Virus record (IMG/VR): IMGVR_UViG_3300028840_002431
Span: 1 to 64,000 of that record
Length of the DNA: 64,000 nt
Reading direction: 5' to 3' (one strand)
In this document: positions 1 through 5,702 of the stretch, piece by piece
Layout: each line of letters starts with the position of its first letter
Position numbering within the stretch: position 1 is the stretch's first letter
Position numbers and translations under genes: made by a program
Notes under the pieces: generated by a model
The model's input: only the letters and a program-made list of their open reading frames with translations
Database searches by the model: none
Told to the model about the DNA's origin: nothing

Positions 1-3000
1 GTGGCTCCGGTCGCTCCTGTTGCTCCGGTGGCTCCTGTTGCTCCGGTTGATCCGGTTGCGCCTGTAGGTCCTGTCGATCCGGTGTTACCTGTGGGTCCTG
101 TGTTGCCGGTTGCTCCGGTCGCTCCAGTGGCTCCGGTTGCACCCGTAGCACCGGTTGGTCCGGTGTTGCCTGTGGCTCCAGTCGGACCCGCAGTAGTAGG
201 ACCTGTAGGACCAGTTGGCCCTAAGGGAGCGAACCCAAGACCTACATCACCATTGTTTACAAAACTTCCCCCGTGCGAAAGATAGGTGACATCGTAAGTA
301 TGATAAGCCCCGCTGTCCGTATGGTTTGTTACCTCGTACGTAACAAAACCCTGAGTTCCATCAGTGCGAAATACCCGGATGTGGTCGCCGGTACTGATCT
401 CGTCCAGCGTTGCGTCCACATTACTCAAGTTCTTATCTACATCACTGGCATAGACCTTTGTAGCTAACGATGGAACCGCGTTGTCTAGCTCGATGAACCC
501 GTTGGACGGAGGTGGACTTGTGTCGGTGGAGTACTGATACTCTAGAGTCCAACCTCCAACCACGCCCGTAGGACCGGTCGGGCCGGTGGCTCCTGTCGAT
601 CCTGTTGGTCCGGTATTGCCGGTATTGCCGGTAGCGCCTGTGGCTCCGGTGGCTCCTGTAGGGCCTGTCGCTCCGGTAGATCCCGTAGCACCTATCGCGC
701 CGGTAGATCCTGTTGCTCCGGTGTTGCCAGTGGGACCGGTTGCTCCGGTAGCGCCCGTGGCTCCGGTGGGACCTGTGACTCCTGTGGAACCTGTTGCTCC
801 GGTGGCTCCCGTAGGTCCTGTGGCACCAGTCGATCCTGTCGAACCCGTAGATCCCGTCGCTCCTGTATTCCCAGTAGCGCCTGTAGTACCTGTTGCGCCG
901 GTTGACCCGGTGGCTCCTGCCGGGCCAGTGCCTCCCGTAGCACCGATTGGTCCTGTTGGACCTGTGGCTCCAGTGTTGCCGGTAGCACCGGTAGATCCTG
1001 TTGCTCCGGTAGCACCTGTCGATCCGGTGTTACCAGTTGACCCAGTGTTACCAGTGGCTCCGGTAGGTCCAGTCGCTCCTGTCGGACCTGGATCACCCTC
1101 AACTGCGAGACAAACAACGCTTCTGTTGTTGTTTACTAGGTCGCCACCGCTATCAATGTTTGAAATCGCCGGGAAACGGACATAACCAGTCTGTTGAGTA
1201 GCGTCCGCGTCAACAGAGAATATATGCATACGGGACGCATCAGCTTGATCTTGAAGATAAAGGGTGTTCCCTGTCTTACCAAGGGCCAGCAAAAATGCTG
1301 TTACATCGACACTATCATTATTCAGATTGTCGAAATATGCCGCTGTTGCCGAAGACTGTGTTGCGTTATTTAACCTAAACCGACCATTGCCAGGGTCGGC
1401 ATCTCCGGTCGAAGTACTAAACCGATAAGTTGTGCAGTTTGCCCCGGCCCCTGCGGAACCGGTGGGACCTGTCGGTCCGGTGTTTCCAGTAGCACCGGTT
1501 GGTCCGGTGTTGCCTGTGCCCGTGGCTCCTGTTGGTCCGGTAGGGCCGGTAGCCCCTGTGCTGCCCGTCGATCCGGTTGCTCCGGTGGGTCCTGTTGATC
1601 CGGTAACACCGGTTGATCCGGTAACACCGGTTGATCCGGTGGGTCCTGTTGATCCTGTAGGCCCGGTGGGTCCCGTTGAACCAGTGGCACCTGTAGGTCC
1701 CGTGGGACCTACCGCAGTAGGACCAGTTGCTCCAGTAGGACCTGTGGGTCCAGTGTCCCCAACAGCACCCCTCAACCTAGTGACAGTTAGAACGATGTCA
1801 GTCTCTGCCGTCTCAGTAGAGGCCGCGTCTTTTTCAAGCTGTAAAGTTAAGTAATCGCCAGCCGATAGCTCCGCCAAAAAGTCGGCACCGAAAACAAGGG
1901 TATCGTTACTATCATCAGAATGGATATTGCCGCCGGGTAAAACAACGGCGTCGTTCTTTCTGATTCGACCTCGATATTCACCCTCGGCACTGGAGTTAAC
2001 TGGCATCCAGTACGTGATTCTGTAAAGACCATCAGCCTTAATATCGACTCGATCAGTGTTTACATTATCGTGTTCTATTACAGACGGTTCGGTTTCAATA
2101 TCCGTCGTATCAAAAGTTATGTCCGACCAAGAATTCGTGAACGTGTAGTCAGTGGTTCTTCTGATTTGCAATGCCGCTAACGTCGCACCGGCCTCCGCCC
2201 CTGTGGCCCCTGTTACTCCGGTAGGACCTGTCGGTCCGGTGTTACCTGTTTGACCAGTCGGTCCGGTTGATCCCGTCGGGCCTGTGTTTCCTGTAGCGCC
2301 GGTTGATCCCGTTGGGCCTGTCGGTCCGGTGTTGCCTGTTTGACCAGTTGGTCCGGTGTTTCCCGTGGCACCCTTTAGCCGAACAACAGTTAGAACAATA
2401 TCCGTTTCCGCTATCTCAACAGACGTGGCGTCTTTCTCAAGCTGTAAAGTTAGGTAGTCGCCAGCCGACAACTCCGCTAAGAAGTTGACGCCAAAACGGA
2501 GGGTGTCATCGGGCGTATGGGCATGAATCAGACTGCCGTCCAAAACGGTAGTGTCGTTTTTCCTGATTCGCCCCCGGTAGTCTCCTTCGGCCTGAGAATC
2601 AACCGGCATCCAATACGTGATTCTGTAGAGACCGTCTTCCTTAATATCGACTCGATCAGTGTCTACATTGTCATGCTCTATGACGGATGGGTCAGTCTCA
2701 ATATCGGTGGTGTCAAAAGTTATGTCCGCCCAGGAATTCGTGAACGTATAATTCGTTGTCCTTCTGGTTTGCAACGCGGCTAATGTTGCACCCGCCGCCG
2801 CTCCGGTGGCTCCTGTTGCTCCGGTAGGACCGGTGTTGCCGGTTGGGCCAGTGGCTCCCGCCCCAGTGTTGCCGGTAGGACCAGTGTTGCCGGTAGGACC
2901 AGTGTTACCAGTGGCTCCCGCTACGCCAGTCCCGCCTGTGGGTCCAGTAGCGCCAGTAGCTCCTGTTGAACCAGTAGCTCCTGTTGAACCAGTGGAGCCG

Positions 3001-5702
3001 GTAGCACCTGTAGCTCCTGTTGAACCAGTGGAGCCGGTAGCACCTGTAGCTCCTGTTGAACCAACTCCCGTGGGGCCAGTAGCTCCGGTCGGACCAGTTG
3101 AGCCGGTGGGGCCAGTGGCTCCTACGGTCGCTCCCGTCGGTCCGGTTGCTCCGGTACTTCCGGCCGGACCTTGTGGAGCAAAACCTAACCCTATGTCCCC
3201 TGTGTTTACAAAAACACCGCCGTGGGAGAGGTATGTGACATCATAGGTGTGATAAGCACCGCTATCGATCGCACCCGTTACCTCGAACGTGACGAATGCG
3301 TTAGTTCCGTCTGTTCGAAACACTCTGATGTGATCACCAATGGTGATCTCGTCTAAAGTTAGATCGATATTAACGCCATGCTTGTCCAGGTCGCTAACAT
3401 AGACCTTAGTAACCAGGGACGGATTAGCGTTATCAAACTCTATGTACCCGCTGACTGGCGGCGGAGAAGTATTGGTCGAGAAGCGGTGTTCTAATGTCCA
3501 ACCACCAACTTCACCTATGGGGCCTTGAGAGCCTGTTGCACCCACCGGTCCAGTTCCGCCAGTGGGGCCAGTCCCGCCCGTATTTCCTGTTGGTCCTGTG
3601 GGTCCCGTGTTGCCGGTTGGGCCTGTTGGTCCTGGGGTTGTCGGTCCTGTCGCTCCGGTAGGGCCGGTTGCTCCGGTGTTCCCGGTAGGTCCAGTTGCTC
3701 CGGTGGGTCCGGGAGTAGTAGGTCCTGTCGATCCAGTTGGGCCTGTCGGACCGGTTGCTCCAAACCCTGTAGGACCAGTTGGGCCGCTAAGACCAGTTGG
3801 GCCGGTTCCTCCTGTCGGTCCCGTTGCTCCGGTACCGCCTGTTGATCCGGTCGAGCCGGTTGCGCCTGTATTGCCGGTAGGTCCGGTTCCTCCTGTCGGT
3901 CCCGTTGAGCCAGTTGAACCAGTGGGGCCGGTTGCTCCGGTGTTACCTGTTGAACCAGTGTTGCCTGTGGCTCCGGTGGCTCCGGTAGGGCCTGTTCCAC
4001 CTGTGGGGCCTGTCGATCCAGTAGGTCCGGAGGTGGTGGGACCTGTTGCCCCAGTGTTGCCTGTGGGTCCGGTCGCGCCTGTAACGCCCGTGTTACCGGT
4101 CGGGCCTGTGTTTCCGGTATTTCCCGTAGGTCCGGTGGGACCTGTTCCACCAGTGGGTCCGGTTGGTCCGGTATTGCCAGTCGCGCCCGTGGGGCCAGAA
4201 GTTGTTGGTCCTGTTGCACCCGTGGGACCTGTTGCTCCGGTATTGCCAGTAGGGCCGGTTGGTCCAGGAGTAGTCGGTCCGGTGGCTCCGGTAGCACCTG
4301 TAGGACCGGTTGGGCCTGTGCTCCCCGTCGGTCCTGTCGGACCAGGAGTTGTCGGTCCGGTGGCTCCTGTCGATCCCGTCGATCCAGTAGGGCCTGTAGC
4401 TCCTGTGGGGCCTGTTGGACCAGGAGTAGTAGGGCCTGTCGCGCCGGTAGAGCCGGTAGGACCAGTGACACCTCGCGGGGCAAAACCGAGACCGATGTCG
4501 CCTGTGTTTACAAACGCTCCGCCGTGGGAAAGGTAAGTTACATCGTAAGTGTGATAAGCACCGCTGTCGGCCGCACTTGTTACCTCAAACGTAACAAAAC
4601 CGTTTGTACCATCGGTTCTGAACACCCTGATGTGATCGCCCGCTTCGATCTCGTCCAGGGTTTTGTCAATGTTAGAGACGTTCTTGTCTACGTCGCTGGC
4701 GTAGACCTTCGTCACCAACGAAAGAGTAACGTTGTCAAATCTAACGTAACCGCTCGGAGGCGGCGGTGTCGTACTGGACGAGTATCTATACTCTAAAGTC
4801 CAACCGCCTACAGCGCCGATCGGTCCTATGGGGCCAGTAGCGCCAACACCTGTCGGTCCGGTTGCTCCTGTCGGACCCACAGATCCTGTCGGACCGGTGT
4901 TACCAGTCGAGCCTGTCGGTCCTGTTGGACCAGGAGTTGTCGGACCCGTTGCTCCTGTATTGCCGGTGGGGCCGGTGGGACCCGTTCCACCAGTTGGTCC
5001 TGTTGGACCAGGGGTTGTGGGACCAGTTGCTCCTGTCGGACCTGTGTTTCCGGTTGCTCCTGTCGGTCCGGTTGGTCCTGGGGTTGTAGGCCCTGTCGCT
5101 CCTGTGGGGCCGGTGTTGCCTGTGGGTCCTGTCGCGCCGGTATTTCCCGTCGGTCCGGTTGGCCCTGGAGTCGTTGGCCCAGTTGCTCCGGTGGGACCTG
5201 TTGATCCAGTGTTACCTGTTGAGCCTGTCGGCCCGACGGAACCAGTAGGGCCGGTGTTTCCTATCGGCCCCGTAGCTCCTGTGGGTCCTACGCCACCTGT
5301 CGGCCCAGTTCCGCCTGTGTTTCCGGTAGGTCCTGTGTTTCCAGTAGGACCAACACCGCCAGTCGGGCCGGTGTTTCCGATGGGACCAGTTGAGCCTGTC
5401 GGGCCGGTGTTTCCGATGGGACCAGTTGAACCTGTCGATCCTGTCGGCCCAGTTCCGCCCGTGTTTCCGGTGGGTCCTGTGTTTCCGGTCGCGCCCGTGG
5501 AACCTGTCGATCCTGTGTTTCCGGTGGAACCTGTCGGTCCTGTTGCGCCAATCCCGGTTGGCCCAGTACCGCCAGTCGGACCGATAGGACCAGTAGCTCC
5601 GGTCGGACCAATAGGACCCGTGGCTCCGGTTTCGCCAGCGCCGGTCGGCCCTGTCGGCCCCGTTGGACCAGTACCTCCGGTTAGTTGATTGACGCGATAC
5701 AC
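1..5702 (-). CDS. Giant collagen-like (Gly-X-Thr) fibre protein with interspersed globular domains; 3'-partial, at least 1,900 aa
   Basis: GTG start at 5702 ([18 protein letters not shown]...) after AAGGT. I translated the six non-repeat segments in this frame and found no stop. All the + strand APVAPV shadow ORFs share one frame, consistent with one continuous minus-strand ORF running off the window. Not in the ORF track. Confidence 0.88.

Follow-up and report, generated by a model that had tools for sequence, protein, structure and literature searches.

The 64,000-nucleotide (nt) stretch analysed here (the window) comprises bases 1-64000 of the IMG/VR virus record IMGVR_UViG_3300028840_002431, a 416,539-bp contig (G000) classed as 'linear' with a CheckV completeness of 87%, and it opens inside a very long minus-strand gene whose product consists largely of Gly-X-Thr collagen repeats. 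We consider it probable that this one gene specifies a homotrimeric, collagen-like 'beads-on-a-string' virion fibre of an uncultured sediment phage of ~417 kb, with joints and glycosylation, acting as an adhesin that leans towards the tail or neck. The nearest terminase relatives of the phage belong to an uncultured 485-kb phage (48% identity) and to Tunturiibacter phage Tunturi_5 (28%); the host of the closest cultured one is an acidobacterium.

Within the window the gene occupies a single frame running from GTG 5702 to position 3, a total of 1,900 codons with zero stops. A preliminary description of this DNA had proposed such a frame, of at least 1,900 amino acids (aa), and an in-frame stop was looked for throughout positions 1-5702 without one being found; 1,900 stop-free codons with glycine in register cannot be a matter of chance. 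GTG 5702 is a plausible start, credible because an AAAGG motif resembling a Shine-Dalgarno (SD) sequence and two in-frame stops precede it. A read-through fusion with the upstream 210-aa open reading frame (ORF), which shares the frame in the window, was considered and rejected, as two stops and the SD-GTG combination lie between them and the two genes are in different frames in the related contig L012. The gene had also been described as uncalled, and the ORF list does contain only overlapping shadow ORFs at this location; the sole cause is that the frame runs off the source, such ORFs being omitted from the list.

The edge of the window is also one end of the contig, and the fibre gene resumes at the opposite end of that same contig. 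The extension beyond the window anticipated in the preliminary description is thus found there, where the frame carries on through 451 further codons of collagen and globular sequence to a stop, a direct head-to-tail join being in frame. The suffix and prefix of the contig have exactly 18 nt in common, and identity between its first and last ~125 nt is 94%. The junction is bridged by contig L011, which comes from a different assembly and matches window positions 2049->70, and then the far contig end, at 100% identity; compared with the direct join, L011 lacks the 18-nt overlap and has an extra 126-nt unit (42 codons), both changes being in frame, and the full-length protein is accordingly 2,352 aa (direct join) or 2,388 aa (L011 arrangement). 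The extra unit may be either real strain variation or an assembly artefact. Two more contigs, L013 and L014, extend 123 and 315 nt past the window edge with open frames, and identity across kilobases of the gene is 99-100% in contigs of at least three other samples, again with all frames open. Neither the Logan contigs of two sediment runs nor those of a seawater run span the junction when tried as a bridge; all stop at window ~108-137, where word depth rises, and they confirm only that every assembly breaks in the repeat of the seventh collagen segment (Col7). A ~2.9-kb Logan contig found in two runs covers window 108-3000 with no differences. Finally, in the relative L012, a 398-kb phage contig, the orthologue lies away from the contig ends as one unbroken frame of 2,267 aa, and its neighbours on either side are the same. 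The bridging contig, the shared ends and the intact orthologue together indicate that the gene is single and intact and that the contig is effectively a closed genome of ~416.6 kb cut inside the Col7 repeat, the record flagged as linear and 87% complete being in fact a closed genome broken within collagen.

The repetitive character of the fibre protein is reflected in its match to Pfam Collagen (PF01391; E 5.2e-108, 353 bits against a cut-off of 27.2), which falls in 16 stretches. Counting runs of at least four in the whole wrapped protein gives 433 Gly-X-Y triplets, with Thr at Y in 390 of them (90%) and Pro, Ala, Ser or Asn at X. There are eight Gly-X-Thr collagen segments in all, together with four beta-barrel modules of the A/C type, three B knobs, and a terminal C1q-like domain, D (Table 1); the seven collagen segments and six globular inserts described earlier for the window correspond exactly to those found there (inserts A1, A2, B1, B2, C, and A3). 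The collagen part amounts to 1,340 residues, equivalent to a triple helix of ~383 nm at 0.286 nm per residue, and the fibre is predicted to be ~0.4 µm long. The collagen part is composed of 35% Gly, 31% Thr and 12% Pro, with only five charged residues in all, and is punctuated by twelve GxTT(P/S)G interruptions. The L012 orthologue has the same domain order and the same 8-residue N-terminus, lacks C, and differs in the lengths of its collagen segments. The possibility of a hypervariable receptor-binding tip was discarded, as per-domain identity to this orthologue (67-94%) is no lower than that of the flanking genes (69-83%). Within this genome the A and B modules are confined to the fibre gene. 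Two other short collagen-like runs of 10 and 7 triplets (G000:110381-110470 and 130098-130160, minus strand) contain neither module, and may belong to smaller fibre proteins.

Table 1. Features of the fibre gene and its surroundings. Positions are those of the window unless prefixed by G000 or L008; residues are numbered according to the direct join (2,352 aa).
Feature	Position	Strand	Residues	Remarks
Large terminase (TerL)	25124-27166	minus
Portal	21041-22834	minus
Prohead protease	15688-17163	minus
Major head protein	12804-13682	minus
Upstream 210-aa protein	5712..6344	minus		9 nt from fibre gene; same position kept in L012
Start region	5700..5714	minus		GTG 5702-5700; AAAGG SD-like motif; in-frame stops TAA 5714-5712 and TAG 5708-5706 closing upstream ORF
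N-terminus			1-8
Col1 collagen	4800..5678	minus	9-301	GxTTPG interruptions
A1 bead	4473..4799	minus	302-410	unnamed small beta-barrel
Col2 collagen	3498..4472	minus	411-735
A2 bead	3171..3497	minus	736-844	78% identical to A1
Col3 collagen	2796..3170	minus	845-969
B1 knob	2373..2795	minus	970-1110	BclA-C/C1q/TNF-like; BclA_C E 2.6e-5; aligned with B3
Col4 linker	2193..2372	minus	1111-1170	20 triplets
B2 knob	1770..2192	minus	1171-1311	BclA-C/C1q/TNF-like; 81% identical to B1
Col5 collagen	1443..1769	minus	1312-1420
C	1098..1442	minus	1421-1535	divergent A-family member; missing from L012 orthologue
Col6 collagen	549..1097	minus	1536-1718	61 unbroken triplets
A3 bead	213..548	minus	1719-1830
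Col7 start	1..212	minus	1839-2068 (whole of Col7)	spans junction; repeat where every assembly breaks
Junction ends	1-137 and G000:416400-416539			both inside fibre gene
Off-window part of fibre gene	G000:416538->415186; stop 415185-415183	minus		451 further in-frame codons
B3 knob	off-window		2069-2210
Col8 collagen	off-window		2211-2225
D, C1q-like C-terminal domain	off-window		2226-2352
Two genes, 195 aa and 340 aa	G000:413574-415183 (L008:17035-18644)	minus		directly after fibre gene; function unassigned
Sulfotransfer_1-family gene	G000:411367-411978 (L008:14828-15439)	minus		25.6 bits against cut-off 22
Gp80-family (PF23140) paralogues	G000:404003-404386 and 406253-406654 (L008:7464-7847 and 9714-10115)			E 3e-42 and 5e-34; GP4 gp80 fibre-monomer family

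The A-type bead, represented here by A1, A2, A3 and, as a divergent member, C, belongs to no Pfam family, and its lone PHROG match is to a family of unknown function. A profile of the domain compared with 1.84 billion representatives identifies 6,231 clusters (counted at 50% identity) at E<=1e-3; the domain is usually present in several copies, in proteins of up to 3,830 aa, and none of the clusters looked up has a name. The family consensus retains Gly-X-Y on both flanks of the domain. The AlphaFold2 model of A1 is a small beta-barrel with a mean predicted local distance difference test (pLDDT) score of 94.7, for which the PDB offers no significant match by fold or by sequence; its AlphaFold DB neighbours at a template-modelling (TM) score of 0.83-0.88 are clusters labelled as tail fibre, tail protein, or T7-tail-fibre-N-containing. 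A large family with a confident fold, lacking both a Pfam entry and a solved structure, merits a name and a structure. When three copies of a Col-A1-Col segment were modelled together, the interface score ipSAE, a measure of the model's own confidence, was 0.67 (0.64-0.71 across runs) against 0.00 for the best control; the runs agreed in at least 89% of contacts with partner pLDDT of at least 84, and chains touch all along the two collagen flanks as well as sideways, from barrel to barrel. This supports, without proving, that the A bead is an in-line trimer, and provides a predicted trimer for this segment of a fibre that the preliminary description had proposed to model segment by segment.

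Two other identities suggested for the A domain did not withstand inspection. A match to an ADP-ribosyltransferase toxin (PF03496) scores 23.0 bits with the whole protein, below the cut-off of 23.4, and 15.7 bits with the domain alone, covering ~45 of 196 profile positions; it was ruled out as spurious given the confident small beta-barrel model with its tail-fibre neighbours, and this is not a toxin gene. A weak PDB sequence match of the A profile to NagJ (E 0.0012, 54 residues) is unsupported by the fold search. We note that an unrelated phage-like contig (L016, from Logan run SRR17165181) contains a larger member of the same architectural class, a gene at 8457-19949 encoding a 3,830-aa protein with collagen, an A domain, and faint C1q, BclA_C and TNF matches, flanked by a family 1 glycosyltransferase (GT1) gene and two pectate-lyase-like beta-helix genes.

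The B-type knobs and domain D are of a more familiar kind. An AlphaFold model of B3-Col8-D contains two jelly rolls, with moderate confidence (mean pLDDT 75), and Foldseek relates these to the heads of C1q, Cbln1 and adiponectin, to ExsFA/BxpB, BclA and F-BclA, and to phage receptor-binding knobs (the phi812 spike, the A-1(L) short fibre, and the 1358 receptor-binding protein). VIA-align Z scores are 18.4 for F-BclA and 17.5-17.9 for BclA (1wck, 2z5w, 3tyj), with a root-mean-square deviation of ~2 A over 128-130 residues; the knob of the phi812 central spike scores 18.0 and PRD1 P5, aligned with the B3 knob, 14.6. A single-chain C1q head aligns over both B3 and D. A PDB sequence search with B3 and D gave no significant match; the few sequence relatives, P0003-P0005, carry PF18573 (BclA_C) in precomputed annotation. 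The models thus support a BclA-C/C1q/TNF fold common to the B-type and D domains, and the resemblance to Thr-rich BclA recognised in the preliminary description extends to both this fold and the predominance of Thr at Y.

Past the junction, the genes downstream of the fibre gene are tightly packed: the 195-aa gene and the 340-aa gene both share one base with the gene that precedes them. Their products have a common 65-residue N-terminal module (46% identity, E 2e-13) and differ in their C-termini, and could serve the fibre as alternative tips, adaptors or anchors. The C-terminal half of the 195-aa protein has a weak likeness to C1q/TNF-like lectin domains. On the other side of the fibre gene, the 210-aa protein is a candidate adaptor; an Atlas search gave it a PRD1_P5_spike_N hint with a score of 0.83, which is within the chance range, and Atlas searches of the three unknown neighbours returned only viral hypothetical proteins, with a C1q-like hint below a trustworthy score.

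The 340-aa gene is followed by a sugar-modification cassette encoding, in order, a 526-aa protein with a double family 2 glycosyltransferase (GT2) and tetratricopeptide (TPR) repeats, a sulfotransferase, two S-adenosylmethionine-dependent methyltransferases, and a GT4/GT1 enzyme. The only two GT2 domains in the genome fall in this cassette, as does one of two GT1 matches. The glycosyltransferases that the preliminary description suggested might lie elsewhere in the genome are therefore immediately downstream once the contig ends are joined, and the core of the cassette is kept in L012, where the GT2x2-TPR, methyltransferase and GT4 genes are present and a 424-aa methyltransferase-domain protein occupies the sulfotransferase slot. 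This variable slot suggests that the glycan differs between strains. To judge from gene order and content, the cassette enzymes probably decorate the fibre; the analogy with BclA is well supported, and the gene context supports the predicted glycosylation. It would be unusual for a phage to encode the sulfation of a glycan or protein. The second GT1 gene lies beside an NAD-dependent epimerase/dehydratase, and this cluster (G000:324460-326442, minus strand) could supply a nucleotide sugar for the fibre cassette.

A triple helix of ~1,340 residues poses the question of how three chains fold in register, and the serial C1q-like knobs and A beads suggest nucleation segment by segment. Trimerisation is obligatory for C1q-like domains, which nucleate a triple helix and set its register. 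By extension from BclA, C1q, TNF and PRD1 P5, the C1q-like domains of the fibre protein would trimerise and start a zipper-like folding of the helix from the C-terminus, and the internal knobs and A beads would re-register the three chains at each segment, such that spaced C1q-like domains and A beads would allow the 1,340-residue helix to be folded piecewise. In the finished fibre the knobs and A beads may serve as joints, together with the twelve interruptions, which are of the G4G type. The Pro-poor, uncharged Gly-X-Thr helix probably depends for stability and solubility on O-glycosylation of the ~390 Y-position Thr residues, a need that arises because there is no hydroxyproline system, only 12% Pro, and just five charged residues; the modification would be supplied by the translationally coupled downstream cassette. 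BclA offers a parallel for this, as does the 'sweet is stable' precedent cited in PMC3368898. The fibre may be anchored through its 8-residue N-terminus or a neighbouring adaptor protein, and would act as a very long, flexible adhesin that widens the capture radius of the virion for host cells or surfaces. More tentatively, we can envisage a BclA-like jointed collagen of ~0.4 µm made by a megaphage. In the host cytoplasm, a dedicated, strain-variable cassette would O-glycosylate the ~390 Thr residues, using methylated and sulfated sugars, and the knobs and bead would be serial folding nuclei. Were this so, no known phage fibre would be longer, and no collagen of a bacterial virus would have been found glycosylated, possibly sulfated, before.

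The location of the fibre on the virion is where the preliminary description and the present analysis part company. It had noted a head module near the fibre gene, and TerL, portal, protease and major head genes are indeed on the same strand (12804..27166); the further step to a head fibre rather than a tail fibre is without positive evidence and is not upheld, given that A-domain relatives occupy tail-fibre slots and that nine genes, including a uracil-DNA glycosylase (UDG)-family gene, a DUF5662 gene, and five without a family, separate the fibre gene from the major head gene. We regard it as unlikely that the same trimeric, glycosylated collagen fibre is mounted on the capsid as a decoration, hair or apical filament, expressed with the head genes and used for a first, non-specific adhesion. 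The fibre gene does lie on the same strand ~7 kb downstream of the major head gene in a tightly packed array, but the non-structural UDG-like and DUF5662 genes separate the two. Similarly, one AlphaFold DB neighbour of A bears the automatic label 'head decoration protein' (TM 0.73), and B3 matches a PHROG of the 'head and packaging' category, a virion structural protein, whereas the strongest structural and contextual relatives of A are tail-fibre proteins, and neither the whole protein nor its domains matched a characterised head fibre or decoration family in Pfam or PHROGs. Among cultured phages, the A domain is in genes annotated as 'tail fiber' in HTVC010P and as 'baseplate wedge tail fiber connector' in a Synechococcus phage. 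One giant A-domain relative follows tape-measure and distal tail genes and has a Gp53-like_C end, another (P0157) is located between a GT1 gene and two beta-helix tailspike-like genes, and others are beside DUF2793 just before an endolysin or have a Peptidase_S74 chaperone. The likeness of the B3 fold to phage receptor-binding knobs points the same way. The Gp80-family genes 9-11 kb downstream of the fibre gene are claimed by both sides: they are included in phrog_240, 'head protein', but cryo-EM places this family in the chain-like tail fibres of podophages (PMC13730344). The fibre gene cluster forms an island between the head and baseplate modules of this genome, and the distance to recognisable baseplate genes, with a helicase between, speaks for the capsid. 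We lean towards tail or neck attachment, as roughly twice as likely as attachment to the capsid; judged from sequence relationships, the fibre more likely belongs to the host-recognition apparatus of the tail or neck.

Several observations weigh against our reading of a glycosylated, trimeric virion fibre of the tail or neck. Only eight residues precede the first triplet, and neither Pfam nor PHROGs identifies a virion-attachment domain at the N-terminus. The fibre gene is ~7 kb past the major head gene, with the baseplate genes ~45-65 kb further on, and the Gp80 family carries conflicting labels in phrog_240 on the one hand and in Pfam and the cryo-EM literature on the other. BclA_C (PF18573) scores below its gathering threshold of 38 bits for all three knobs (B1 24.5, B2 25.9, B3 16.7). 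The trimer job, with three copies and a custom alignment, is outside the calibration of the tool, and collagen-like complexes are well represented in the training data. A glycosyltransferase is adjacent in only one of the six other giant A-domain relatives sampled, and glycosylation therefore does not characterise the family as a whole. The arrangements of the repeat at the junction differ by 36 codons. The break of all assemblies inside the Col7 repeat, the arrangements that differ by one 126-nt unit, and the elevated word depth at the window edge could be taken to indicate that the giant ORF is chimeric, or its repeat mis-collapsed or mis-expanded, and that the true gene is much shorter or split. 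We find this hardly credible given the near-identical, open contigs from at least three other samples, the Logan contig that agrees with window 108-3000 in two runs, and the orthologue of matching domain order uninterrupted within L012. We also give little credence to a non-virion role, in which the product would be a phage-encoded glycoprotein deployed inside the infected cell or on its surface, perhaps as a coat that serves superinfection exclusion or aggregation, similar to prophage-borne bacterial collagen-like surface proteins. Clusters of glycosyltransferases in jumbo phages have been interpreted as systems for modifying the host surface (PMC7824862), but here, judged by eye, the eight residues ahead of the collagen are too few for a signal peptide or membrane anchor, phage fibre proteins have the same modules, and the gene is among structural genes.

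Collagen-like phage fibres are already known, and are common, though usually short and simple; what is notable here is the size, the architecture, and the dedicated modification cassette, with ~383 nm of helix and eight beads that would make the fibre several times the classical tail-fibre length. One close parallel is with BclA and F-BclA of Bacillus (the exosporium nap and the Ena tip fibrillum, respectively), which have Gly-X-Thr repeats, a knob of C1q/TNF-type fold, and genes for glycosylation and methylation alongside. The Thr residues of BclA carry rhamnose-anthrose oligosaccharides made by neighbouring genes. BclA, however, is the product of a spore-former and has one short collagen stretch and one knob, in contrast to the eight segments, three internal knobs, second type of terminal knob and four A beads of this phage-encoded protein, whose BclA_C matches are below the cut-off and whose gene has a sulfotransferase alongside; the N-terminal exosporium-targeting domain of BclA is also absent, there being only the short leader before the collagen. 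PRD1 P5 is likewise a viral fibre with a collagen-like motif and a TNF/C1q-like trimeric knob, but it is ~340 aa long, with a very short collagen motif and an N-terminal vertex-binding domain that the fibre protein lacks, and it belongs to a tectivirus and not to a tailed megaphage. We know of no glycosylation cassette for PRD1 P5. Mimivirus reportedly has glycosylated fibrils with collagen-like proteins, according to a review of giant-virus glycans; it is a eukaryotic giant virus, and the glycosylation of the megaphage fibre is a prediction.

Among tailed phages, the EPclA-D proteins of E. coli prophages (Stf-type side tail fibres) are experimentally trimeric, with a collagen triple helix and capping trimerisation domains; their longest collagen domain is 322 aa, they contain PfN, PfC and coiled-coil domains, and they are unglycosylated (PMC3368898). 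The present fibre differs in its ~1,340 collagen residues and in having C1q-like knobs and the A barrel as beads. The PHROG families 'collagen like minor tail' and 'tail fiber' match it strongly through the repeats. Also close is the A-domain fibre family of phages and prophages, in which A is flanked by Gly-X-Y and often present in several copies, and of which P0157 adds C1q/BclA_C-like domains and the neighbouring GT1; most members, in contrast, occupy ordinary tail-fibre slots of smaller phages and end in Gp53-like_C, DUF2793 or Peptidase_S74, and a full modification cassette is found only in this lineage among the A-domain proteins examined. There is also a report of a C1q tail protein from a jumbo cyanophage (PMC7824862). 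Virion glycosylation in mycobacteriophages is phage-encoded (Freeman et al. 2023, as cited in PMC12619734), also by virus glycosyltransferases next to structural genes, but its targets are the C-terminal tails of capsid and tail-tube proteins and not a collagen fibre. The 'Moraphage' paper itself (PMC12619734) was considered as a description of this lineage and set aside, as it makes no mention of collagen. In the open-access literature we found no description of a multi-knob Gly-X-Thr fibre of ~2,400 aa with a glycosylation, sulfation and methylation cassette in a megaphage. The linkage of cassette and fibre gene makes phage-encoded glycosylation of collagen testable, and may provide parts for recombinant collagens that are free of hydroxyproline and stabilised by glycans.

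The surrounding genome presents several further features. Baseplate-hub and Baseplate_J genes are at ~364-372 kb and ~351 kb, and a search of the genome for the tail sheath families PF04984 and PF17482 gave no match. A scan for promoters and terminators from the head gene to the fibre gene gave nothing above shuffled sequences, and a look-up of RNA runs listed none. The UDG-superfamily and DUF5662 genes, at 10071-10727 and 11174-11830 of the window, interrupt an otherwise purely structural-looking array. A 944-aa ORF in the gap between the portal and protease genes (18177-21011) has essentially no family match, and could encode an internal head or ejection protein. On the same strand, positions 33771-62624 form a block of replication, repair and auxiliary genes that includes a clamp loader, an SbcCD-like nuclease, a UvsX-like recombinase, a RecD/exonuclease V-like helicase, an NAD-dependent DNA ligase, a ribonucleotide reductase, and a full-length GroEL.

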